In this document: positions 1 through 36,445 of the stretch, piece by piece
Numbering within the stretch: position 1 is the first letter of the stretch
How the letters are laid out: the number at the start of each line of letters is the position of its first letter
Origin: Schizochytrium sp. TIO01
Taxonomy: Eukaryota; Protista; Bigyra: Labyrinthulomycetes
Assembly (NCBI GenBank): GCA_004764695.1
Contig: SMSO01000007.1
Location: forward strand, 2,363,270-2,427,269
Reading direction: 5' to 3'
DNA: 64,000 bases
The notes under the pieces: model-generated
What the model was told of the DNA's origin: nothing
The model's input: the letters and a program-made list of their open reading frames with translations, nothing else
Databases searched by the model: none
Translations under genes and position numbers: made by a program

Positions 1-404
1 TTTATAACATAGACAGGATCCTGTTGTAATAGTAATATGAAAAGTAGAGGCATTCCTTCATCAGTATGATATTGCGAAAGCAAAACTTCCAGTGAAAGGT
101 CTTGGGGTCGTTCAATGAAATTATAAAGAGTTAGGCAAGAAATTTATTTATATCCTAAATCAAGCAAATCTATAATGAAGTTTGAGCTTGATTGAAGTGA
201 TAATTAAACAAAATAAGGGGCAATAAAAGATAGCGTGCATTTATAGGGGACATGTTTATGAACTATGGCGGACACCTTCCATACTAAATTGGAGTGACTT
301 GTTCTCCTTGAACCGTGACGCTAGATTTAGGAAATATGAGCGCCTATCTTTTTTATCTCTTTTTTTTTTAAACCAGGAGAAGAGTGAATCATGAAACGGT
401 ATGC

Positions 405-1040
405 CTAGGACATGCAAAAGGCAAATACTCGCTTAGCAAAACCGTGCAACATCTGGCGACCGTATGGAATATAGCTTGCCATGAGCCAAAGATAACTAGA
501 GAATTGGATAATAACCAAAACAAGGCAGATGATACCGATCTGTAGATATACAGCAAAAACAAATGTCAGGACTAGAGTAGATACGTACAAGATTGCTGCA
601 ACACGGCGAGTTTCATTGAAAAGGGTTGTGCAGAATCGAGTTGGTCCTACAAAAAACATACTTGATCCTAATGACAGCAAATTGCCCATGGTATAGGGCA
701 GCGCAAATTTCTCTGGTTTGAAGACAATTGATGGCACGAAAAAAGTTGAGGAGATACTCATGAACGTGCCGATGCAAAAACAAATGACGAAGCCATAGAG
801 CCGAGTTTCATAGCTGAGCCCAGCGCACATCGAATTAATTTCTGCGTCAACTTGAGACCCTTCTGGGGTTACACGTTCTGCATCTTCTGCCGCAGACATA
901 TTGAATGAAGGTAGCGATCGAAAAAAGCCCCATCTGCTGCTGCCTGTTCCATTGGCCTCCCCCAGCTCAGGGTCGTCCTCCTCCACAAGCGTTACTGTCT
1001 CAGCCGCATCATCTCTCGCTCCGCGGCCGAAAAGAAACAT
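405..1040 (-). CDS. SFT2: Got1/Sft2-family vesicle transport protein (211 aa)
   Basis: Motifs LSYETRLYGFVICF, PEKFALPYTMGNLLSLGSSMFFVGP and SYIPYGR; four hydrophobic helices. The first ATG is at 1040 in an ACCGCCATG context; the ORF-track start at 1259 is non-ATG. Confidence 0.93.
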   Translation of the reverse strand: MFLFGRGARDDAAETVTLVEEDDPELGEANGTGSSRWGFFRSLPSFNMSAAEDAERVTPEGSQVDAEINSMCAGLSYETRLYGFVICFCIGTFMSISSTFFVPSIVFKPEKFALPYTMGNLLSLGSSMFFVGPTRFCTTLFNETRRVAAILYVSTLVLTFVFAVYLQIGIICLVLVIIQFSSYLWLMASYIPYGRQMLHGFAKRVFAFCMS

Positions 1041-2008
1041 GGCGGTCGTAGAGCTTTGTGTTGTACCTCCTCGAGTATTAATTGGTTTCGCTGATGCTAT
1101 AGTTGCTGCTGCTTTTGGCCTCCTATTCTTTTCCCCAAGATATCCTGTGCAGGACTGCGTGCGATCAGATGAAAGGGCAGTCAGTAACTTTCTTGGCACT
1201 TTCTCCTGCGCTTCGTATCCGACACCCAGCGAGAGCCCAGCTGTTTGCCTGTTTATCAATGAATTGTTATTAGAGATAACCTGCCTGTCTGCCTGATTAC
1301 CTGCCAGGCTTTGCTCCGCTTAGTTTTGTTGAGGTTACTTGTTGGTGCATTGTGTCTTTTGGTCTTAACCTTCTCTTGTGTTCCTTCCAAACTGTAGTAC
1401 CTAATGTCTAATCGGAATGAATAGAACTCCCTACTCCCTTATAATACATATCATATAAGTTAAGTAGAATTTCAGCCAGCCCATCTTGGCATCGTTTCGC
1501 AACACATGGACAAAGAAGAATTCAAACGGGTAATACTATAATTAACATCGTCATTTCATTATTTATAATTTCAATCCTGCTCAGGATCTTAACTTGTTTA
1601 CGTCCTGTGAATAGACTAAAACTACATCCCCCTATTGGCTTTTCCCTATACTGTGCTTTTATTTTGTATGCACCCGTGCATATCATATAGCCGACCTAAA
1701 TGCACACCTAAGACATATATTTCATGGCGGAGGGTTTACAGATTATCAGAGAAGACATCAGAGCGATAGATAGTTCTTTTGTGGCGTTTACATAGTATTT
1801 GATCTCTTTTGTTGAAAAAATACAAAATGTAACAAAGAAGGCGGATGTAGTAGAACACCATCTATCAGGTTGAAAATGGTGTATAGAACAAGAGAAGGGT
1901 CATTTAGAAAGAATATGGGAGTAACAGAAAGATACACAATTTTCAATTAGCTAATCTGAAAAAATCAATAATAAACAAATAGGCACTGGTGAACGTAGTG
2001 TTCTAAGA

Positions 2009-4036
2009 TTACAATTGCTGGTTCATTCTACGAAGGCTAGAAAGCTGATCGGAAACCGCACTTGATGCACAACGTACATCATCAAGTTTACGCCGCCAAT
2101 CCATGTCCAGTTCTTCATCTGGCTCTGTCGTTGCGTCAGAGCGGCTCGATATACTCTGATTCTTGGTCAAGAGCAGAGCCTTCTTTCTCACTTCTGATAA
2201 GGTTTCTATAAACTTACGTGAGGCCACAACATCTCCATCGTCACTAAGATCTCCAGAATTAGAAGATTGTTCGCACGTAGATGATTCCTCACAAACCATA
2301 TCTTGGTGCTGAGAACCGGGTTCCTGTTCTTCAGCAAAGAAAGGAGTAAATGGACTTGCGCTGTTGGTCCCGCGCGTAATTTCTTCTTGTAACATAGCTA
2401 CACGGTTATCATACTGCATGGCCATTGAACGCACATAACCCACGCTTTCCGGGGTTGAATGTGAGCGAAAGTAAGGCCGGCGTGATGGAACCTCTACAGG
2501 TGGCGGTCGAGCAATTGATCTGTGCTCTTGCCCAAGACGCTCTTGAATGCGAGCTAGCGTCTGCCGCAAAGACTCATCTTCTCTGTTGAAGGTATCTCCA
2601 CTTTCGGCAAGCTCCTCGCGAAGAAAATCTAGAAGTTCTTCGATAGGGTCAACCGCACTATCGACCATCTGCGGCGCAGGTTCCGTGCCAACGTTTGCAT
2701 CTGTTCGCAAAACCTTGGGTTTTGTCTCAGTCTCTGTTTGAACTGCAGCGTCTACCTTTGAAAACTCTAACGAACTTTGGGAAACCCCAGTGAGATCTGA
2801 GTTCGTTTCAGTTGTTGCATCATGAGACTGAACAATATCTGTTTGAATTGAGGATTCCACCAGGTCACACGCCAGTGCCGAGACTAGCGTCTGGATAGCA
2901 ATACTCTCTGTCCTTGGTCTGCTGATGGCTTTTTCGTCAGCTTGAGAGGACATGCTAGTCCCTTCGTCTGAGGTTTGAACCCCAACAGACAGATGTGGTT
3001 GTCTATTTGTTGCCTGTGTCTCCCTCATTTCTACATGATTCGGTTGTTGCTCCAATGTAATATCCTTGTGACGAGGTGAAGGGGAGAGAGAAAGGATCTT
3101 CTGGCGGTTTGGTCGAACAAGGCGGATTTCTATGGCCTTGGCTACAGGAATATCCTCATCATCTATACCCCCCAGGAGGCTTCTGTTATACCTGGGCTTC
3201 TGGGTGTCTTGATGACGCAGCAGGTTATCAAGACCTGCTGTGGGGTTATCGCTAGCTGATAGCATTTTTTGAGCTTGATTTTTGGATACGTTGCGGGAAG
3301 ATGCGTCATCGCGATCAAGTTGAGATTTTAAAGCAAGCTTTGCTTGATCTGATACATGTTTGCTCTCAGAACTCAAGTCGCAGGCCTCTTCCTCAGCATC
3401 AACAAAAGCTTCCGCCTCAACCTCTTCTGCACCTTGGATTGCAAGCTTCTCAAGAAGCTTGCGGGAGGCTTCCGTTGGATTTGGAGATCGGGGAGACGCA
3501 GGTGGAGGACGGCGACTGAAGTAGGTGTGCTCACTCCCGACAACCGACCCGTGAGAATGAATCGAGGTCGAGCGTTGGGACATCGAAGCTGGCGACATTG
3601 GGTATGCCTGTGCAAATCTTGCTCCAGAGTGTACAGATTCATCGTATGGATACGCCAGAGCTGCCATTGGAGGTGGCGCCATGGTCATTACTGATGGATG
3701 GTGTTGCGGCGAAGAATAAACAGAGGATGGTTCAGGATTGGGATAATAGTGCTGCGGCATTTGGTACTGTTGCATTTGCTGTATTTGATAATCGTCTTCG
3801 TAGGATAATTCGTCTTCAGTATTGTAGCGTCTTTGACGCAAGCGCCGCCTTGAATCCAGCAGCTGTCTCACTGTCTGGAAATAGTCCGTAGACAACTCTT
3901 GAGAGGCAGTAGATCCATAGTCGAGGTATGAACAGTCGTCCAGACCTTTTCCAGGAGGTTGTCCAAGCCCCATAGAGCGAGCCTCTCCGTACCAGGTCTG
4001 CCCGCTGACCTCCATTGCAGTAGGTCGCCACTCCAT
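2009..4036 (-). CDS. Hypothetical, largely disordered 675-aa protein with an array of LC8-type (xxQT) motifs and short coiled coils
   Basis: 2-kb ATG-initiated ORF, S/Q/P-rich, with repeated SVGVQTS, SIAIQTL, SSIQTD, DAAVQTE and DANVGTE. Confidence 0.8.
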   Translation of the reverse strand: MEWRPTAMEVSGQTWYGEARSMGLGQPPGKGLDDCSYLDYGSTASQELSTDYFQTVRQLLDSRRRLRQRRYNTEDELSYEDDYQIQQMQQYQMPQHYYPNPEPSSVYSSPQHHPSVMTMAPPPMAALAYPYDESVHSGARFAQAYPMSPASMSQRSTSIHSHGSVVGSEHTYFSRRPPPASPRSPNPTEASRKLLEKLAIQGAEEVEAEAFVDAEEEACDLSSESKHVSDQAKLALKSQLDRDDASSRNVSKNQAQKMLSASDNPTAGLDNLLRHQDTQKPRYNRSLLGGIDDEDIPVAKAIEIRLVRPNRQKILSLSPSPRHKDITLEQQPNHVEMRETQATNRQPHLSVGVQTSDEGTSMSSQADEKAISRPRTESIAIQTLVSALACDLVESSIQTDIVQSHDATTETNSDLTGVSQSSLEFSKVDAAVQTETETKPKVLRTDANVGTEPAPQMVDSAVDPIEELLDFLREELAESGDTFNREDESLRQTLARIQERLGQEHRSIARPPPVEVPSRRPYFRSHSTPESVGYVRSMAMQYDNRVAMLQEEITRGTNSASPFTPFFAEEQEPGSQHQDMVCEESSTCEQSSNSGDLSDDGDVVASRKFIETLSEVRKKALLLTKNQSISSRSDATTEPDEELDMDWRRKLDDVRCASSAVSDQLSSLRRMNQQL

Positions 4037-27291: not shown

Positions 27292-28625
27292 GGGGAAACG
27301 GTACAACGCGAGTAGCTTAGACTCTTACTGTTCGCAGCGCCCTTGGACAGTTCTTTGGTCGAGGCACAAGTGGATGAACTTCAGACAGTTGATCAACTGG
27401 TCAGCAAAATATGAAAGTGAATTGAACGAGACTGAAAAGTAACCGGAGCGCGCAAGTGCAGGACTGGTACCTAGAGCCAGGAACTGCTACGACTTGATTG
27501 CACTTTGCTGTTGTATAATATTGCTGCTGACTTTCAACATGGCAAGACTCACTCTACTTAGAACTCATTTTCAACTTTGTATGCAAATGGCTCGACTGTC
27601 TTTTCTAATAAGTCTCCCAGCAACTTGCTACCTAGGTGGTACTAGTAGAGCCTATGCATTAGTTAGCCGAAAGTAGGGCAGCTGGCCCCTGTATTTGTGC
27701 TTGAAAATGGCGTTCCTGCTAAGACGCATGCTCGTTTCAATTTATTCAATCAACGTAGCTACATTTTCCAGGATAAGCGATTGATACTAGCTAGCTTCAC
27801 ATATGGATGAAGAGCAAAGCCTTGAACACATCACGCAATCGATGAGAATCCCAACAAGTTGCTAGTCCTTATTTCTTTGAAGTATCTCAGGCTGCCGTGC
27901 AACCAGAACTCAAGAGGGAAAATGTAGAAACTCGAATAGCAGAAGATTTATACAAATGAGATAGTTTCGAGAAGATTATGACCAAACTGCACAGAGTGTT
28001 TATTGCAAGAGGTTATGTAGTATTCAATAATTTTTGTGAAATCTAAAATTAATAGATTATGCGTTATTCTCCAGTTTCCACGTACATGCGAAATCTAGTT
28101 TTGCGAATTAGCAAACAGCAAGCTGCTGCTGTGATTTCATTTCGCACAAGTACCAAACATTCTATCGTTCTACTAAGTTTTGTTAACTTTCATTACTTTT
28201 CTTGTAGATTTGTAGGTTATGCATGAAGCTGCATTTTGACAAGAAACAAGAAGAAATAATAGATATAGCTAAGATTTAAACATTTAGAAAATGCGCGATT
28301 CATTCAGCCTCTTGCAAGCTTGAGGTATATCGAAATGCAAAATTTGTGCAAGAGCGTAATCCCAACTTCAACTACTTAATGAAATAGTACCTACTCCTAA
28401 CTGCTAACTACTTACTGTAGATACATCTATTTTTATGAACAAACTCTAAATGGGCACTGATGGGAGGAAGCGGATAGGGTTCATTGCGAAGCAACGCTTC
28501 GCACGGACTTACCATTTAAAGCCATTTCTGCAAGAATATAGGTGTTGCAACCCTTGTTGCTGTTGTTCTCTAAACGCGAGTGCGTGAGTGGCCCAAGGTT
28601 AAAAAAAAAAAGACTCACACTCATC

Positions 28626-31550
28626 ATGGCAACTTCTGGAGCATCTCCAAATATTAGACCTCCAGAACTTCGCGAAAGCGCTTATGAAGAAAGTCGGCGA
28701 GAGCGCGAAGGGTATCGCCGGCGATTCCAGGATGAAGACACCCCAGCAGAGTTTCGCTACAAGTTTCTTGACCAAAAATTGGCGGTTCGCATGCTGCTGA
28801 GGACTCGGAGGAGACGCATACTTGTGCTGGAGTGCGCTGCTTATACAATATTAGTGGGCTTTTACTGCATTTATCTCTTTGCGTTCATGTCGCTTCCAGA
28901 CTCGTACTTGTATAAACGTCTCTTTGCACAGACACTTGCGACTAAGCCGTTTAACTTTGAAAGAGTCTTTTACCGATACTCTCCCGGTGGTGGCGAAACT
29001 CCTTCGGAACAGTGCACCCTGCCGCTTAAAAGTGCGAGCGACGTCTTCACAAGTAGCACTGCACAGAACAATTCAATTCCTTGTCTCCAAGGAATTCAGT
29101 CGCTTACATTTGCAGAGATTCAAGATGTGGACCATACATATAGCTGGCTGCAGTTCGTTCTACTTCGATCACCCCTTTTTGTGGGTGGTGAAGACCGATC
29201 TCAAGTTTTTGTCACTATGACAGCTTCTTTAGAGGGCCAAAGCGAAGACGATAGTCGTACGACACTAATAATGCCTGACAACTCGTTTATTCCGGTAGGC
29301 GCGGTTCGCCTGCGACAACTTCGCGTAAAACGGGCCCCATGCTCCAATGATACAGTATTCGAAGGCCAGACTTGTAATTTACCATTCAGCGAAGCAAATT
29401 TGAACACATCCGATATAGTGGGTACCTCCTCAGGCCGACTGTATTCCTTCCAAAGTGCGGATGACTTGGCTAAGGCAAGCTTTTCAGCTTCAAACATTGC
29501 GAGCGAGGTCAACCTCGACTCTGGAAAGCTTAATGCGCCAGACACATATCAAGGCATTCTGGAGAATTACCCTGGCTCCGGGTACGTGATTGATATTGAG
29601 GGTGGAAATGGAACAATAGCAACCGAAACATTTGAACAACTGCAAATGGACCGCTGGATCGACGAAAGTACAGTTGCTTTATTTGTTTCGTTTACGGCTT
29701 ATGCTGTCAATTTAGATACTTACATACACCAAACATTTCTTGTAGAGCTGAGTTCATATGGCCTTACTGCTACAAGCATGGAGACACGCCCGTTCAAACT
29801 ACTAATTTCTCAAGATGGTGCATGGGCTTTGGAGATCTTATTGATGACTCTTTCAAGTGTGTTATTGGTTTTAATATTTTATTATCACTTTTGGCCTGCT
29901 TTGCAAACATCTCGATCGATCACAAGCTTACTTCTCGGGTGGGATATGTATGATGTTTTCAACTTATCTATGGTGATTGCGTCAGTAGCTGTACGAATGA
30001 CTCTACGAACATCTAGCACGGCACAGCTTGCAACAAAAGAGGCAACACTTGTCTCCCTGATGACAGAAAATCGTCGTGTTTACCCTGCAGTGTATGAGAG
30101 TTATTCACGAGTATTAGTTAAAGCGCAAATGCTGGCTGGGTGGTCTCTCGTCATTTGCTTTCTCAAGTACTTTAAGTACGTGGACATGAATAAGCGGTTC
30201 AGCATTGCACTTGCAAGTCTTGTGGAAAGTCGAACTCGGTTGGCTGGTTGGCTTGTATTTACTGTGATTGTAATTCTTGGCTTGACATTCTTTTGCATGT
30301 TTGCTTATGGATTTTATTCATTACGATTTGCAGAATTTTCTGAGTCTTTGACTAGTTTGCTTCTCTTTATGGTGCAAATTTTTGGGGAGGGATTTGACCA
30401 TCTTTCTGGAAGCGATGCTGCTACCTCATCAAGTTGGAGTTCCTTGAGCTTTGTTGCTTTACGCTATGGAACTACAGGGCTGCCGATGAGTCTTTCTGCG
30501 TTTGAGGTAGTGGACAAATCGTATTCAATTCCTCTTGCACAGAGCCTATTTTTTTCAATTTTACTTGTGGTTGTAGTGATCATTCTTGTGGCTAATATGT
30601 TTCAGGCCATTCTGATTTTAGGCTATCAAACAGTGGCTCACCAGGTTCAAGAAGATGAAAATCTGCGCAAGGAGCAGCGCGAGGTTCTTTTACGTAGTCA
30701 AAGAATGTTAAATCAGAGTTGGTTAAGACGCCAAGTCAAAGAACTAGGCCGCATGCTACGATTTCGAGAGCATGCTCGGATTATCAACCAATTACAATCA
30801 GCCCCTGAAGCCCGAGCACGTAATCTTCTGTCATACGCAGAGGTTCGACGTCTTGTAGGAGAAATCGTGACCACTGATTCCCAAAGAGCATCAGAAATAG
30901 CCTATGAGCTAATGTCCCTGTATCAGACTACACTGTCTAGGATTGATGATGCTGTAATTTTGTTCCAGGATCGTGCAATTGCCTTACGGGAGGGCCGTTT
31001 GCACGAGAAGTTAGATCCTTCCGAGCTCCCTGTGATAGACCCTTCCCAAGGCTTTGACGCTGCTCAAGCAGAGCTGTGGCGTAGGGATCTCCAGTCCGGT
31101 GAGCTCCTTCAATCAATGCTATTAGTACATAGTTTGCAACTAGAGGCCTCATCAAAGCATTTCAAGAAGGATTTGGATCAAATTCTGCAGGGTGAAAGAG
31201 ACCACCGGGAGCTGTGCATCAATTTAGAGACAGCAATGCACGAACTCCAATCGAAGGAAATTGCGAAAAAGGGTGATATTCGTACATCACAGGACCCATA
31301 TGAAGCTCGGCCTGGATCTATTGTGGAGGTTCGAATTGATGGTTTATTTGATGCTCATTTTGTCAGTCAAGGCGGACACCATACATACCTGGGTTGTTAC
31401 CCTACACGTAGTGCTGCACAAGGTGCCATTGAAGACATGGCGGTTCGAGCCACGATGGAAGATGCTCAAACTCTTCGACTTCGTAATGTAAGTCGCGAAT
31501 CTGGTGCTACTTCTCCTCCCGGTTCTATATCATATCATGATGGGGAATAG
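28626..31550 (+). CDS. Polycystin-2 (TRPP/PKD2)-like cation channel (974 aa)
   Basis: TOP-domain motifs GAVRLRQLRV, YPGSGYVIDI and LQMDRWIDESTVALFVSFTAY; six TM helices; FLKYFKY; S6 ILVANMFQAIL. First ATG at 28626. Confidence 0.9.
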   Translation: MATSGASPNIRPPELRESAYEESRREREGYRRRFQDEDTPAEFRYKFLDQKLAVRMLLRTRRRRILVLECAAYTILVGFYCIYLFAFMSLPDSYLYKRLFAQTLATKPFNFERVFYRYSPGGGETPSEQCTLPLKSASDVFTSSTAQNNSIPCLQGIQSLTFAEIQDVDHTYSWLQFVLLRSPLFVGGEDRSQVFVTMTASLEGQSEDDSRTTLIMPDNSFIPVGAVRLRQLRVKRAPCSNDTVFEGQTCNLPFSEANLNTSDIVGTSSGRLYSFQSADDLAKASFSASNIASEVNLDSGKLNAPDTYQGILENYPGSGYVIDIEGGNGTIATETFEQLQMDRWIDESTVALFVSFTAYAVNLDTYIHQTFLVELSSYGLTATSMETRPFKLLISQDGAWALEILLMTLSSVLLVLIFYYHFWPALQTSRSITSLLLGWDMYDVFNLSMVIASVAVRMTLRTSSTAQLATKEATLVSLMTENRRVYPAVYESYSRVLVKAQMLAGWSLVICFLKYFKYVDMNKRFSIALASLVESRTRLAGWLVFTVIVILGLTFFCMFAYGFYSLRFAEFSESLTSLLLFMVQIFGEGFDHLSGSDAATSSSWSSLSFVALRYGTTGLPMSLSAFEVVDKSYSIPLAQSLFFSILLVVVVIILVANMFQAILILGYQTVAHQVQEDENLRKEQREVLLRSQRMLNQSWLRRQVKELGRMLRFREHARIINQLQSAPEARARNLLSYAEVRRLVGEIVTTDSQRASEIAYELMSLYQTTLSRIDDAVILFQDRAIALREGRLHEKLDPSELPVIDPSQGFDAAQAELWRRDLQSGELLQSMLLVHSLQLEASSKHFKKDLDQILQGERDHRELCINLETAMHELQSKEIAKKGDIRTSQDPYEARPGSIVEVRIDGLFDAHFVSQGGHHTYLGCYPTRSAAQGAIEDMAVRATMEDAQTLRLRNVSRESGATSPPGSISYHDGE

Positions 31551-32112: not shown

Positions 32113-34554
32113 TTACTTCTTCTGAGCGGCATCACGACGCTCAATGTTGCGCTCAAACGCCTTACGGAGAGTGTCAGTATCAACCATGAATGCGTAGGAG
32201 TCATTCTCCGGGTTAGCAGCCATCCAGCCGATCTCCTTGGCAAGACCCATGGTAGCATGTCCGCCAACAAAGTGCTTGTCGTACTTCAGGGTGTCAAGCA
32301 CCTGGTCGATTGTCATGGTGTCAGGGACGAAGCAGGGGAGACCAGTGGCACCAACAATCTCGTAGTGCTCGTCGACAACGTTCTCCTTACAAATGCCGAG
32401 GAGGTAGGCGACCTCAGCAGAGACACACATACCGATGGCAACGGCCTCACCATGGAGCAGAGGCTCATTGCCATGATGCCAGGAAAGGTGCTCGATGGCA
32501 TGGGCCGGGGCATGGCCATACTGAGGCACCATCTCGTTGTAGGCGTGCTCAGCGTTATAAGCTGGTCCGAGAGTAGAGACCTTCTTCTCCATGCATTCAA
32601 TAATAAGGCGAAGAAGATAGTCTCCATCGTGGAAGACCTCGGAGCGGTTCTCACCAGCGTCACGAAGAGGGTCGACGATCAACTTTGTGAAGTCAGTGCA
32701 CTGGCACACAGCGTGCTTAAGGGCCTCAGCGATACCATTGAGAATGTGGCGGTCACTGAGAGACTTGAGACAGTCAGGGTCCATGACGAGGTAATCGGCA
32801 GGGTAGTAGCAACCCAAGAGGTTCTTACCAAAGTCCTGGACGTTGAAGGCCTTCTTGAAATCACACGAGGCATCGCACATACCCATGGTGGTGGTCGGGA
32901 TGGTCACGAGCTTGATACCACGATACAAAGTGCCTGCAATCGTACCTGTGATGTTGTCTACAGTACCACCTCCGAGTGAGATGAGACAGGTGTGCTTGGA
33001 CACTCCGGTGGCGAGAATCTGGTCAACGATGCGGTGAAACTGCTCCTTATTTTTGTAAGGTTCAGTAGAGGGCTCACCAGAGTCATCCATGGCTGCAGAA
33101 GGAATGACAATCTTGTCAATGGTGAGCCCAGCGTCGCGGAAGCCCTGAAGGACCTCATCTGCGTAGAGACCGTCTACGATCTCATCAGTGACGAGATAGT
33201 TGTGAGCCTCATGGGAAACCTCAGGGACAATGGTCTTGCCGATGGTGGCAAGGTTCTTGAGGATGCCACGCTGGATGACGATCTCTGTCTCGAGGTATTT
33301 TCCGGGTCTCTCGAATCTGTTACGGAAGCATCCGTTCTCGTCGACTTCACAAGGCGTACGGAATGCCTGCGTTCCGGGATGTCCTCCACGCACACAGTAT
33401 TCGGAGTCCTTGTCGAGATCGAACCAAGGAGGGCTCACGAAGCGAAATCCGCGGTCAAGAGCGTTGATACGCTCCATCTGAGGGTTCGTAAGACGCCAGT
33501 CGAGTACATCGCGGTTGGCGTGAATTCGCTCTGGGTTAAGGCTCTTGGGGATTACAGTGGTGCCACGCTGGATACCCCACCGGAGGAGTACCTGGCCAGG
33601 CGCCTTGCCAACCTCTTCGGCGATCTCAAGAATGGTTTCGTCCTCGAGAAGCGAAGGGTCACCCTTGTTGCGGTAACCGACCTTGCCAAGAGGCGAATAG
33701 GCGATGACGTTCACACCCTCGGTCTGGCAAAGCTCAAGGAGGCTGGGTTGCTGGAGGTAGGGATGCATTTCAACCTCGAGAGCGAGAGGACGGATGTCGC
33801 ACTTCTCGAGAAGAAGCTGCAAGGTGCGAGCACCCATGTTGGAGACACCAAGGTAGCGCACGAGTCCGAGACCGACGAGGCGTTCCATGGCCTCATAAGT
33901 CTCCATGATCTGGTCGATGTCAGTTCCGTCATGAACAACGTCGTACTCAAACTCGCCTCCGAAATCTGGTGAGACCAGCTTGCCTCCCTTAGCCATGCGG
34001 TTAGGCCAATGCATCATGTAACAGTCGAGGTATTCGACTTGGAGGTCCTTCAAAGTGCGACGGCAGGCATCCTCCACGTCTTCCGGCGCGGCATCCCAGC
34101 ACCAAAGCTTGCTACATACAAAAAGGTCATCGCGCTCGACAAGACCTTCATCGAGGGACTCGGAGATGGCCTCGCCAACCTCCTTCTCGTTTCCATACAG
34201 TGCGGCGCAGTCAATCATGCGGTAGCCCTCTCCAATGGCGACCTTGACGGCCTCCTTTACACGGTCACCATCCTTGAACTCGTTGAAGGTACCGAATCCG
34301 AGGAGAGGAACAGCCACTGTAGGTTGTGAGACAGTGGAGCTGGTTCGGGAGCGGGTCTCGATAAGGTCATCGAGGGTGCTGAGAGCGGCAGAGCTATAGT
34401 TGGAGCTCATTTTGGTCTCGCTCTCAGAGCTGCGGAGAGAATCAGTGGTGCGAATGGCATCATCCTTGGAGGTGTTGTCTACAACCTTGGGGGTCAGGAT
34501 AGTGTCTTCCTGCTGCTGCTGGGTCTGCTGCTCGATCTGATTGCTGATGGCCAT
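32113..34554 (-). CDS. Fusion of an aldo-keto reductase and a 2-deoxy-scyllo-inosose synthase-like sugar phosphate cyclase (813 aa); putative quercitol synthase
   Basis: AKR (about 34317-33440): GFGT, IDCAALYGNE, SKLW, MHWP, GVSN, AYSPLG, IPKS. Cyclase (about 33290-32113): GGGTVDNITG, LYRGIKLVTIPTT, DASCDFKKAFN, GKNLLGCYYP, AEALKH, QYGHAPAHAIE, LLHGEAVAIGM, DKH. Confidence 0.9.
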   Translation of the reverse strand: MAISNQIEQQTQQQQEDTILTPKVVDNTSKDDAIRTTDSLRSSESETKMSSNYSSAALSTLDDLIETRSRTSSTVSQPTVAVPLLGFGTFNEFKDGDRVKEAVKVAIGEGYRMIDCAALYGNEKEVGEAISESLDEGLVERDDLFVCSKLWCWDAAPEDVEDACRRTLKDLQVEYLDCYMMHWPNRMAKGGKLVSPDFGGEFEYDVVHDGTDIDQIMETYEAMERLVGLGLVRYLGVSNMGARTLQLLLEKCDIRPLALEVEMHPYLQQPSLLELCQTEGVNVIAYSPLGKVGYRNKGDPSLLEDETILEIAEEVGKAPGQVLLRWGIQRGTTVIPKSLNPERIHANRDVLDWRLTNPQMERINALDRGFRFVSPPWFDLDKDSEYCVRGGHPGTQAFRTPCEVDENGCFRNRFERPGKYLETEIVIQRGILKNLATIGKTIVPEVSHEAHNYLVTDEIVDGLYADEVLQGFRDAGLTIDKIVIPSAAMDDSGEPSTEPYKNKEQFHRIVDQILATGVSKHTCLISLGGGTVDNITGTIAGTLYRGIKLVTIPTTTMGMCDASCDFKKAFNVQDFGKNLLGCYYPADYLVMDPDCLKSLSDRHILNGIAEALKHAVCQCTDFTKLIVDPLRDAGENRSEVFHDGDYLLRLIIECMEKKVSTLGPAYNAEHAYNEMVPQYGHAPAHAIEHLSWHHGNEPLLHGEAVAIGMCVSAEVAYLLGICKENVVDEHYEIVGATGLPCFVPDTMTIDQVLDTLKYDKHFVGGHATMGLAKEIGWMAANPENDSYAFMVDTDTLRKAFERNIERRDAAQKK

Positions 34555-35326: not shown

Positions 35327-36445
35327 CCTCTATTTCTTTCTTTCTTTTGTCTTTCTTAAACTCAAGTTGTTTGCTCGTTCCTTGCCCTTTCGTTTGTCGG
35401 CGTCTTGAGCCCTCAGCTGCGTAGTGGGCAGTGACCTCAAGCCCGGCTCCTTTGTCTCAGGCTGCTTCGAGTAGAAATCATGCGCTGCAGGTCGAGTTGA
35501 GAAAGGGGAGAAAGTGGGGTTTCTTGCATTTTCCCGCTTTTCATGATCTTGCATGATCCATATCTTCCTTCCGTATGTCTCCTTTGCATTTTTCCTGAAA
35601 GAGTGAAAGAAAGAAAGAAGCAACAAAGAATGCAATGGAGAATTCCCAAACCTTCCAAGTGTGCAGTGCTGAACAGCATCGTCACTCTCAATTTTTTCTT
35701 TCTTCTTTCTTCTTTCTTCTTTCTTTTCTTCTTACTTCTTTCTTCTTTCCCTTCTTTCCCTTCTTTTCCTTTTCCCCGTTGTTTCTCGTGCTTTTCTACA
35801 GAAATGGTAAAAGTGCTCCTGCTTCGTTTTCTCGATCATTCTTCTTTTCCTTTCTTCACGCTGCGGCGTCGACCCCTCACTCTTCGCCTCTTTCTTGTAC
35901 CGCATGCGTGTTCTTCAGTCCCTCCCTCTTCGGCCGCGGTGCATGCTTGCAAAGCAACGCAAGGCCTGCCAGTCTTCTTGATATTTTCGCTATTCTCTCT
36001 CACTCAACATCAGAGAGCCGCGTCGCTCCCTTTCTTCATCCACCTCCCACGCCCTCTGCTCAGCCCTCCCTTCGAGCTCCAAGTCTTTAGCACGATAGTA
36101 GTAAGGGCGCCACCGCCCTCGCTCGTCTGATCTTCAAACTGCACGCGATACCGCTTGATTGTGAAGCTGCACTAGATGCACCTAAGCACAAACCATGCAA
36201 GCTTATGCTGTTTCGATTGAGGTGCGGCATGCCGGGTTTTACGAAAACCTGCAGGCATGTTGTATCAAAAGATGCGTAGAGCTGCAAGCTTTGCAATCTG
36301 AGCAGAGACAGTTTATTCACCTTCAGGCTTGTCATTGAATCGAGCAATATTCATGTTTCTTATTTGACATCATTTGCAAAAGCGGATGCTGTAAGAGGTG
36401 GAGAATTTGCATGTTCTACTAGAGTAGCCCTGCGTCGACCCCGTG

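Follow-up and report, generated by a model that had tools for sequence, protein, structure and literature searches.

A fused aldo-keto reductase and sugar phosphate cyclase of Schizochytrium sp. TIO01 as a candidate bifunctional cyclitol synthase

The window analysed here, a stretch of 64,000 nucleotides from the thraustochytrid Schizochytrium sp. TIO01, carries an open reading frame in which a complete aldo-keto reductase (AKR) is joined to a sugar phosphate cyclase (Table 1). The frame opens with an ATG and contains no internal stop; its second Met is residue 49. A transcriptome-derived protein (P0124, from MMETSP0958) is the same as the product of this frame, save that it has an additional Gln in the N-terminal poly-Q tract, a tract which differs by one Gln also from the JGI protein P0001; this near identity indicates that the AKR-cyclase fusion is present in mRNA. 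A paralog with 86% identity lies on contig C34, both fusion paralogs have full-length transcripts, and in the whole genome the PF01761 genes comprise only a DHQS and these two fusions. Of the public sequencing runs, 22 contain this stretch, none of them recorded as RNA. The neighbours of the gene are a polycystin-like channel, a MINDY deubiquitinase and a PhyH-like protein; among the genes of the 64-kb window no functional link to the fusion is seen.

Table 1. Features of the AKR-cyclase fusion gene, in positions of the window.
Feature	Position	Strand	Basis and remarks
Whole gene, AKR-cyclase fusion	32113..34554	(-)	ORF listing and Pfam; 813 aa, intronless, stop codon 32113-32115
N-terminal extension, residues 1-85	34300..34554	(-)	Ser/Thr/Gln-rich, without domain match (Pfam)
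Aldo-keto reductase domain, residues 86-367	33454..34299	(-)	Pfam PF00248, 6.9e-51
Interdomain linker, residues 368-432	33259..33453	(-)	Without match to either Pfam domain
Sugar phosphate cyclase domain, residues 433-813	32116..33258	(-)	PF01761 and PF24621, DHQS fold
Class-defining pair, one short helix	32521..32535	(-)	E674, 32533-32535; Q678, 32521-32523

The reductase half shows both features by which the AKR superfamily is recognised, an (alpha/beta)8 domain and an Asp/Tyr/Lys/His tetrad: the PF00248 match spans positions 3-290 of the 291 of the model, the tetrad (D115, Y120, K149 and H182) is intact and aligns with the motifs of AKR1A1, and the NADPH-type IPKS motif is intact at residues 335-338 (33541-33552). 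Its best solved relatives are the aldehyde reductase AKR1A1 (2alr, 2.4e-76) and the aldose reductase AKR1B1. The original prediction of an AKR with a D/Y/K/H tetrad and an IPKS motif, fused in frame to a cyclase with E/H/H metal ligands, is thus borne out by the reading frame, the Pfam matches, the residue positions and the transcript.

In the cyclase half, Pfam recognises the N-terminal DHQ_synthase domain at residues 496-604 (PF01761, 2.5e-25) and DHQS_C at residues 607-761 (PF24621, 9e-19). The conserved residues of the superfamily map by alignment to R545, D561, K567, N578, E610, K613, K658, H681, H685 and H701; the metal ligands E610, H681 and H701, together with R545, D561, K567, N578 and K613, are each invariant across all 148 aligned sequences (the universal pocket residues being R130, D146, K152, N162 and K197 in A. 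nidulans numbering), and all residues of the metal, NAD and phosphate sites are present. The motifs GGGTVDN (528-534), DFKK (565-568), GKNLLGCYYP (576-585), QYGHAPAHAIE (678-688) and LLHGE (699-703) lie where the original prediction had placed them, with one departure from the BtrC pattern that it had read into them: EYGHTIGHAIE of BtrC is QYGHAPAHAIE here, Glu243 of DOIS being replaced by Gln. An AF2 model of the domain (pLDDT 93.7) matches the DHQS of A. nidulans (1nvd) with Z 42 over 341 residues and rmsd 2.1, and DOIS with Z 37; since the values for DHQS, ValA, DOIS and DDGS all lie at Z 36-42, structure comparison does not tell the classes apart, and the second rank of a DOIS cluster (0.94) in an Atlas look-alike search is a lead only. 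By its fold and its universal residues, the domain is assigned to the DHQS-like sugar phosphate cyclase superfamily.

A 2026 review of sugar phosphate cyclases distinguishes the classes DHQS, DOIS, EEVS, EVS, DDGS and DEIS. From all of these the fusion cyclase is set apart by two residues in a stretch that is helical in the AF2 model (residues 240-246 of the domain): Glu674, in place of DHQS Arg264, and Gln678, in place of DHQS Asn268 and DOIS Glu243. This Glu/Gln pair is invariant in the 128 family members (128/128; 95 eukaryotic and 33 bacterial) and differs from the pair of every labelled class, which is Arg/Asn in DHQS and Gly-or-Ala/Glu in DOIS; by these sequence criteria the Glu/Gln clade is a distinct, previously undescribed class of sugar phosphate cyclase. 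A reading of the domain as a DHQS, with quinate as the end product, is rejected by the fingerprint, by the HMM cut-off and by the separate canonical DHQS of the genome: Arg and Asn are found in all seven labelled DHQS, and TIGR01357, the aroB equivalog model, gives the fusion cyclase 188.8 bits against a cut-off of 305, whereas the genome's own DHQS (L001, on contig C35) reaches 328.9 bits.

Nor is the domain a DOIS of the BtrC type, as had originally been predicted, because the position of Glu243 holds an invariant Gln and the family forms a separate clade with its own fingerprint. Glu243 (BtrC numbering), the catalytic Glu of the E-Y-G-H motif, is present in BtrC and in all three labelled DOIS, and its loss in the fusion is the ground on which membership of DOIS is rejected. 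The scores agree: the domain obtains 105 bits against 2d2x (BtrC) and 117 bits against a DHQS, while true DOIS reach 248-266 bits with 2d2x and no more than 178 with DHQS; BtrC is thus no clear best match, and the domain lies outside the DOIS clade. The phylogeny of the C-terminal domain that the prediction had called for nevertheless puts DOIS closest among the characterised classes. In this labelled maximum-likelihood tree (LG+C20), the bipartition uniting DOIS with the Glu/Gln family has a support of 100/98, the stems that separate the two being long (1.79 and 1.18), and among 96 family-conserved columns 11 are common only to DOIS, three only to DHQS, four only to the sedoheptulose cyclases and two only to EboD; the residues common only to DOIS include the Asn of GGGxxxN, the YYP after GKNL and the Tyr of YGH. 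Since constraining the family with DHQS costs 16 log-likelihood units and is not rejected by the AU test (p 0.152), the placement of the Glu/Gln cyclases as a separate clade, sister to DOIS, is favoured, not proven.

The Glu/Gln family is not specific to thraustochytrids, for it has members among diatoms, eustigmatophytes, haptophytes, pelagophytes and choanoflagellates as well as in many bacteria. The fusion of AKR and cyclase is shared by diatoms (e.g., Nitzschia) and Nannochloropsis, and a stand-alone cyclase is found in Prymnesium, Monosiga and Salpingoeca. Of 17 bacterial loci, which span Patescibacteria, Alpha- and Betaproteobacteria, Campylobacterota, Chloroflexota and Bdellovibrionota, 16 have an orthologous SDR (50-66% identity) no farther than about 4 kb from the cyclase, and some bacterial proteins are NT-cyclase-SDR fusions. 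In stramenopiles, a non-homologous AKR takes the place of the SDR; this class of cyclase has been joined to a ketoreductase twice. The conserved coupling makes it a well supported prediction that cyclase and ketoreductase together would yield a neutral deoxy-cyclitol. Operons of the Patescibacteria type further contain an APH-family kinase, an IPCT-like nucleotidyltransferase, a CDP-alcohol phosphotransferase and TagF-like transferases; the best matches of the nucleotidyltransferase are inositol-1-phosphate cytidylyltransferases (2xme, 1e-7; NF041135, 9e-21), and the presence of an IPCT-like domain with a CDP-alcohol phosphotransferase suggests a CDP-cyclitol intermediate in these bacteria. 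A neutral cyclitol would fit such an operon, and a CDP-cyclitol route that has gone unrecognised is suggested by the operons for Patescibacteria as well as for the O-antigen-like clusters of Rhodopseudomonas and Burkholderiaceae.

We consider it somewhat probable that the Schizochytrium fusion is a bifunctional cyclitol synthase and, with its C34 paralog, the most likely source of (-)-proto-quercitol. The bifunctional reading is based on the architecture, the catalytic residues, the class fingerprint, the separate DHQS, the fused transcript and the bacterial coupling to a ketoreductase; substrate, stereochemistry, product identity and a role as osmolyte are inferred. The C-terminal cyclase, NAD+- and metal-dependent, would act on a hexose 6-phosphate by the DHQS/DOIS mechanism, that is by oxidation, phosphate elimination, re-reduction, ring opening and aldol closure, releasing a deoxy-inosose free of phosphate; its ketone would next be reduced with NADPH by the aldose-reductase-like AKR at the N-terminus, which would yield a deoxy-inositol, namely a cyclohexanepentol or quercitol. 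The pocket of the cyclase appears to be of the hexose rather than the heptulose type, K250 and H275 being kept as in DOIS and DHQS, and quercitol is a plausible candidate product.

According to papers citing Jakobsen (2007), (-)-proto-quercitol is a principal and abundant compatible solute synthesised by thraustochytrids. In the literature searched we found no report of another thraustochytrid deoxy-cyclitol, no gene assigned to quercitol biosynthesis, in agreement with the original prediction, none for the cyclohexanetetrols that diatoms and haptophytes contain, and no salinity transcriptome mentioning the fusion gene. Stereochemistry restricts the route considerably: yeast with BtrC forms quercitols from DOI by reduction, and reducing 2-deoxy-scyllo-inosose leads to the scyllo or vibo form of quercitol rather than the proto form; therefore a route from glucose 6-phosphate through DOI cannot give (-)-proto-quercitol, and a version of the predicted pathway in which DOI is the intermediate on the way to the thraustochytrid solute is excluded. 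The configuration of (-)-proto-quercitol points instead to mannose 6-phosphate, which should be the substrate if this quercitol is the product. As neither DOI nor DEI, the deoxy-inosose formed by EboD (see below), is expected to be reduced to proto-quercitol, either an aldol closure of unprecedented stereochemistry or an additional epimerase would be needed; ring closure would have to give the new carbinol a configuration opposite to that of both DOI and DEI.

This hurdle lends weight to an alternative that we regard as less probable, namely that the fusion is a cyclitol synthase-reductase with a product other than the osmolyte (-)-proto-quercitol, the quercitol of thraustochytrids being made otherwise, for example from myo-inositol, a conversion known in bacteria. 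Such a product could be another quercitol (the scyllo, vibo or epi form), a compound on the way to cyclohexanetetrol, or a cyclitol destined for a lipid head group, a glycan or a signal. The family is wide among eukaryotes for which we found no report of quercitol (diatoms and Nannochloropsis among them, in the literature searched), and the cyclitol reported from diatoms is a cyclohexanetetrol; the occurrence of the fusion in such taxa means that its product may differ, or that its role is wider than thraustochytrid osmoadaptation. In the bacterial operons, moreover, the cyclitol would be activated and transferred rather than accumulated, as judged from gene content; against an extension of this to Schizochytrium, no kinase, nucleotidyltransferase or transferase partner is seen beside the fusion gene in the window. 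The abundance of (-)-proto-quercitol, the only deoxy-cyclitol that we found reported in thraustochytrids, and the two expressed paralogs, which suit a high flux, likewise argue for the osmolyte.

Decidedly less probable is the use of another sugar phosphate by the cyclase, such as sedoheptulose 7-P, an amino sugar 6-phosphate (e.g., GlcN6P) or a deoxy sugar phosphate, with a C7 cyclitol, an aminocyclitol or a more deoxygenated cyclitol as product. Because DHQS binds the carboxylate of its substrate at the position of Glu674, this residue should face the anomeric end of the substrate, where an amine or an additional hydroxymethyl group could be a partner for its acidic side chain. Sedoheptulose 7-P cyclases (EEVS, EVS and DDGS) are recognised by Met at K250, Pro at H275 and Asp at N268 (Ala in DDGS), Met and Pro being found in 6/6 labelled references; the fusion has Lys658, His685 and Gln678 at these positions, and its family groups with DOIS, on the opposite side of the 100/98 branch from the C7 cyclases. 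Membership of EEVS or DDGS is rejected on these residues, as the original prediction had held, and for thraustochytrids we found neither a C7 cyclitol nor an aminocyclitol reported in the literature searched. A caution comes from EboD, a DHQS-like cyclase of bacteria and stramenopile algae, whose substrate had been predicted by phylogeny to be sedoheptulose 7-P and which in fact converts mannose 6-P to a C6 deoxy-inosose, DEI (2024, as cited in PMC12904256); guesses of substrate from phylogeny can thus fail. The fusion cyclase itself is not an EboD/DEIS: NF004852, the PRK06203 model, gives it 136 bits against a cut-off of 333 (an EboD scores 594), Lys658 and Gln678 stand where EboD has His (K250) and Asp (N268), and no ebo genes lie near the fusion gene in the window.

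It is very improbable that the cyclase is a divergent DHQS paralog whose substrate is DAHP, the AKR then reducing dehydroquinate to quinate, or that the fusion joins unrelated functions by chance: the best PDB matches in sequence and structure are indeed DHQS, and database names read 'DHQS' or 'AROM', but the invariant Glu at Arg264 would repel DAHP, Asn268 is a Gln, the aroB score lies well under the cut-off in a genome with a canonical DHQS on contig C35, and the pairing of cyclase and reductase recurs with another reductase family in 16/17 bacterial loci, none of which has an aromatic amino-acid context.

The bifunctional cyclitol synthase reading makes the fusion the best candidate so far for the pathway to quercitol-type salt-protecting cyclitols of marine protists. 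More tentatively, and with less confidence than for the fusion itself, the Glu/Gln cyclases may be viewed as a new and widespread class on which deoxy-cyclitol pathways are founded: together with a reductase, either a fused AKR or a separate one, they may be entry enzymes for the deoxy-cyclitol solutes of marine protists, for thraustochytrids (-)-proto-quercitol and for diatoms and haptophytes perhaps 1,4/2,5-cyclohexanetetrol, the thraustochytrid enzyme being a mannose 6-phosphate cyclase with a new aldol stereochemistry; in the bacterial branch, Patescibacteria included, cyclase, SDR, kinase and IPCT-like nucleotidyltransferase would lead to a CDP-deoxy-cyclitol for envelope polymers or lipids. 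If this is true, one class with a distinctive active-site pair is added to the sugar phosphate cyclases, and a single polypeptide would convert a hexose phosphate to a chiral quercitol, useful for precursors of carbasugar drugs. Schizochytrium and Aurantiochytrium, which have (-)-proto-quercitol as a principal compatible solute, are industrial producers of DHA, and the gene would also offer a lever on the salt tolerance of thraustochytrids in fermentation.

Compared with known systems, the fusion cyclase has in common with DHQS (AroB, or the corresponding domain of AROM) the fold, the cofactor and metal sites and, presumably, the multistep mechanism, and departs from it by Glu for Arg264, the residue that binds the DAHP carboxylate, by Gln for Asn268 and by a score under the aroB cut-off, in keeping with the original claim that it does not follow DHQS. 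With DOIS it shares the fold, the metal, NAD and phosphate-site residues, K250 and H275, and probably the chemistry, from a hexose 6-phosphate to a phosphate-free deoxy-inosose; it differs in that the residue four positions before that of Glu243 is an invariant Glu and not Gly or Ala, and its product cannot be DOI if proto-quercitol is the end product. DOIS, furthermore, belongs to an aminoglycoside cluster, where its companions are an aminotransferase, a radical-SAM dehydrogenase and a PIG-L deacetylase, whereas the cyclase described here is fused to a reductase, or in the bacterial loci adjoins one, outside any such cluster. The likeness to EboD lies in mannose 6-P, its substrate and also the one to which the configuration of (-)-proto-quercitol points; EboD, however, belongs to another clade, next to the sedoheptulose cyclases, and reduction of DEI would not yield proto-quercitol. 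[quoted passage not shown] Finally, the AKR domain has the D/Y/K/H tetrad and the IPKS NADPH motif of AKR1A1 and AKR1B1, enzymes that convert sugar carbonyls to polyols; unlike these, it is joined to a cyclase and to an 85-residue Ser/Thr/Gln-rich extension, and its substrate is presumed to be an inosose, hence a ketone in a ring, instead of an aldose.

The AKR-cyclase fusion is probably a bifunctional cyclitol synthase-reductase whose cyclase domain represents a new class. Its gene is an uninterrupted open reading frame, as seen in the ORF listing, with a GC content of 0.54 against about 0.42-0.47 in the flanks. The nearest solved relatives of the aldo-keto reductase domain are aldehyde reductase AKR1A1 (2.4e-76) and then aldose reductase AKR1B1; the catalytic tetrad D115/Y120/K149/H182 is kept and the IPKS motif lies at residues 335-338. 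Evidence of expression comes from MMETSP-derived proteins: P0124, from the MMETSP0958 transcriptome of the same organism, equals the fusion except for one added Gln in the N-terminal poly-Q run, so that the fusion is real at the mRNA level, and P0121 matches a paralog, L003. The in-frame fusion with a full tetrad, as originally predicted, is thus confirmed by the reading frame, the Pfam domains, the motif positions and P0124, and every cyclase motif then quoted was found where it had been placed. The window sequence has one Gln fewer in its poly-Q run than P0124 and the JGI protein P0001 have, which may be a polymorphism in length or stem from the assembly; the N-terminal extension of 85 residues, rich in Ser, Thr and Gln, could be regulatory.

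Coordinates of the fusion gene, its domains and neighbours, and of related loci
Feature	Location	Strand	Details
AKR-cyclase fusion gene	window 32113-34554	-	813 aa, ATG start
N-terminal poly-Q run	window 34519-34554	-	
Aldo-keto reductase domain	residues 86-367		Pfam, 6.9e-51
3-dehydroquinate-synthase-type domain, N-terminal half	residues 496-604		Pfam
3-dehydroquinate-synthase-type domain, C-terminal half	residues 607-761		Pfam
Part of a T/C-rich low-complexity intergenic stretch	window 35687-35771		upstream of fusion gene
Adjacent ORF	window 28542-31550	+	1002 aa; Polycystin domain 5.9e-22, weak PKD-channel match
Fusion paralog L003	G000:C34:1011166-1014492, ORF 7-2457	+	816 aa, contig C34
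Canonical DHQS L001	G000:C35:81615-84953, ORF 1420-2616	+	contig C35
NT-fusion operon	L023:8252-16990		MAG contig CAZMHV010000002.1; two TagF-like transferases
Cyclase-SDR in polysaccharide cluster	L033:5486-17070		Paraburkholderia atlantica; GT4 glycosyltransferases, UDP-GlcNAc 2-epimerase
Cyclase-SDR in polysaccharide cluster	L038:2181-15587		R. palustris BisB18; GT4 glycosyltransferases, RgpF, DUF5672, ABC-2 exporter, RmlD

In the genome (64 Mb in 37 contigs) the DHQ_synthase model matches three genes and no more: the fusion, L003 and L001. L003 shares 86% identity with the fusion over the whole protein and 92% within the cyclase domain, and the Glu/Gln pair described below is also found in it. 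L001, a stand-alone reading frame of about 400 residues carrying GGKT and RALLNLGHT and not embedded in a pentafunctional AROM, is the canonical DHQS. A DHQS identity for the fusion is rejected, and with it a place in the shikimate pathway, because it scores 188.8 on the curated aroB model (cut-off 305) where L001 scores 328.9, and because Arg264 of DHQS is replaced by Glu674. Two sources, the thraustochytrid Hondaea fermentalgiana and the MMETSP0958 transcriptome, supply the entries that cluster with the window protein; the Hondaea entries for the cyclase domain are fragments publicly named "pentafunctional AROM polypeptide", which looks like a misannotation. Among the window neighbours (a polycystin-like channel, a MINDY deubiquitinase and a PhyH-like protein) no functional link to the fusion was found; the adjacent reading frame is, by its predicted domain, a polycystin-like cation channel beside a putative osmolyte gene.

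Against solved structures the cyclase domain scores 117 bits to DHQS, 105 to DOIS (BtrC), 87 to EEVS (ValA) and 57 to DDGS, and appears about equally distant from all four. All residues of the universal pocket are kept (R130, D146, K152, N162, E194, K197, K250, H271, H275 and H287 in A. nidulans DHQS numbering), while the position of Arg264, which in DHQS binds the DAHP carboxylate, is occupied by Glu674 and that of Asn268 by Gln678. Labelled references for comparison were annotated genes from plasmid records, vetted by gene context: three DOIS, two of them in aminoglycoside-type clusters (PIG-L deacetylase, glycosyltransferases, radical-SAM enzyme, DegT aminotransferase); five sedoheptulose-7-P cyclases plus the Nostoc DDGS from a mys cluster; two EboD, one adjoining eboE, UbiA and eboA and the other scoring 594 bits on PRK06203; and, for DHQS, six aroB genes and the genome's own enzyme. 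The two DOIS searched against solved structures (L004 and L005) score 248-266 bits to BtrC. Glu at position 264 and Gln at 268 occur in all 128 relatives (95 eukaryotic and 33 bacterial), without other differences, and every labelled class departs from this pair: Arg and Asn in DHQS, and Gly/Ala and Glu in DOIS, both likewise without other differences; Ser/Ala and Asp in EboD, which has His at 250; a variable residue and Asp in the sedoheptulose cyclases and Asp and Ala in DDGS, these last two with Met at 250 and Pro at 275.

In the phylogeny (IQ-TREE, LG+C20 PMSF, 60 rows by 370 columns) the family forms a single group (support 100/100) on a long stem, with its eukaryotic members monophyletic inside it (100/99), and a 100/98 branch separates the family and DOIS from DHQS, the sedoheptulose cyclases, EboD and two unassigned Streptomyces proteins. 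Thirty of the 96 family-conserved columns set the family apart from all the others; DOIS alone shares 11, the sedoheptulose cyclases alone 4, DHQS alone 3 and EboD alone 2. The predicted structure of the cyclase is confident (pLDDT 93.7) and matches all cyclase classes at Z 36-42, so that it does not discriminate between them; domain residues 240-246 form a short helix in this model, on which Glu674 and Gln678, four residues apart, should share one face. The cyclase of the fusion is read here as a distinct class of sugar phosphate cyclase, with DOIS most probably its sister group. The earlier description of it as DOIS-like, and neither DHQS nor EEVS, holds as an affinity but not as membership, and the grouping on the DOIS side has to be read with the AU test, which does not reject a tree holding the family with DHQS (delta lnL 16, p 0.152; long branches are involved). 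A BtrC-type DOIS is rejected: in BtrC the catalytic Glu243 stands at the Asn268 position, where the fusion has Gln678, and the family is separate and its Glu/Gln pair invariant.

Relatives at 45-58% identity are found in diatoms (Nitzschia inconspicua, Entomoneis), eustigmatophytes (Nannochloropsis, Microchloropsis), a chrysophyte, pelagophytes, the haptophyte Prymnesium (three copies) and the choanoflagellates Monosiga and Salpingoeca, and roughly half the cluster representatives from eukaryotes have the N-terminal AKR domain. A JGI metagenome protein (P0002, 935 aa) has tandem family cyclase domains (residues about 203-589 and 616-914) but lacks an AKR domain. Bacterial relatives (40-46% identity) often have a fused N-terminal nucleotidyltransferase (NT) and some also a C-terminal SDR. 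Scanning a single genome for each species gave 19 loci, with stand-alone cyclase genes in, among others, Rhodopseudomonas palustris BisB18, Rhodopseudomonas sp. AAP120, Paraburkholderia atlantica, Trinickia symbiotica, Burkholderia diffusa, a Sulfurovum, a Chloroflexi bacterium and a Bdellovibrionales bacterium. Leaving aside the query's own, 16 of 17 loci have an orthologous SDR (50-66% identity to the L023 enzyme) no further than about 4 kb from the cyclase, in most cases immediately downstream. One cyclase class is found with two non-homologous ketoreductases, the bacterial one an SDR and the stramenopile one an AKR; this double coupling, which is independent of the reasoning behind the original prediction, is the strongest computational evidence here for a putative two-step cyclitol synthase.

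The NT-fusion loci are ordered as CDP-alcohol phosphotransferase, NT-cyclase fusion, SDR, APH-family kinase, second nucleotidyltransferase, methyltransferase and TagF-like glycerophosphotransferases, an order that recurs from L023 in L024, L026 and L029 and in part in L027, L030 and L031. The top solved and curated match of the fused nucleotidyltransferase is inositol-1-phosphate cytidylyltransferase (2xme, 1e-7; NF041135, 9e-21), far below family cut-offs. On the simplest reading of the gene order, a keto-cyclitol formed by the cyclase would be reduced by the SDR to a neutral cyclitol, phosphorylated by the kinase, converted by the nucleotidyltransferase to a CDP-cyclitol and passed by the transferases onto a lipid or polymer. 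That a kinase should be needed agrees with a cyclase which, like DHQS and DOIS, eliminates the phosphate. The operon is a candidate pathway by which Patescibacteria-type genomes would supply a CDP-deoxy-cyclitol to a lipid or wall polymer, and no report of such a pathway was found in the literature. In the two proteobacterial loci examined, L033 and L038, the O antigen- or capsule-like clusters around the cyclase and SDR hint at a cyclitol residue in a surface polysaccharide of culturable bacteria.

(-)-proto-Quercitol, according to papers citing Jakobsen et al. (2007), is synthesised by thraustochytrids as a principal compatible solute, and no gene assigned to it was found in the searchable literature. 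The fusion, originally taken as its complete pathway, is a candidate for the source, the case for and against being evenly balanced, and through this gene the old open question of the cyclitol's origin becomes directly testable. Its product is not simply to be equated with quercitol: diatoms and eustigmatophytes also have this fusion, and the deoxy-cyclitol reported from them is 1,4/2,5-cyclohexanetetrol; moreover, phylogeny-based guesses of substrate have been wrong before in this superfamily. Should quercitol be the end product, the label DOIS (glucose 6-phosphate to DOI) would still be unlikely for the reaction on stereochemical grounds: by DOIS atom mapping (hexose C6-C1 bond, C5 to ketone, C2-C4 unchanged) reduction of DOI can only yield scyllo- or (-)-vibo-quercitol, in line with what was seen in yeast expressing BtrC. 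A review from the Ogawa group likens (-)-vibo-quercitol to beta-D-glucopyranose and (+)-proto-quercitol to beta-D-galactopyranose; (-)-proto-quercitol would then be D-manno at the carbons of hexose C2-C4 (the alternative being the uncommon L-galacto/D-altro), which would make a two-step route from mannose 6-phosphate chemically possible. Such a route to (-)-proto-quercitol would require the ring to close with novel facial selectivity, followed by reduction of the ketone to an equatorial alcohol, and that selectivity would be set at Glu674 and Gln678, which by analogy occupy the DHQS positions touching the carboxylate on the anomeric carbon and the phosphate. In (-)-proto-quercitol the hydroxyl at the carbon derived from C1 would be trans to that at C2, whereas DOI and the mannose-derived DEI of EboD have the opposite configuration.
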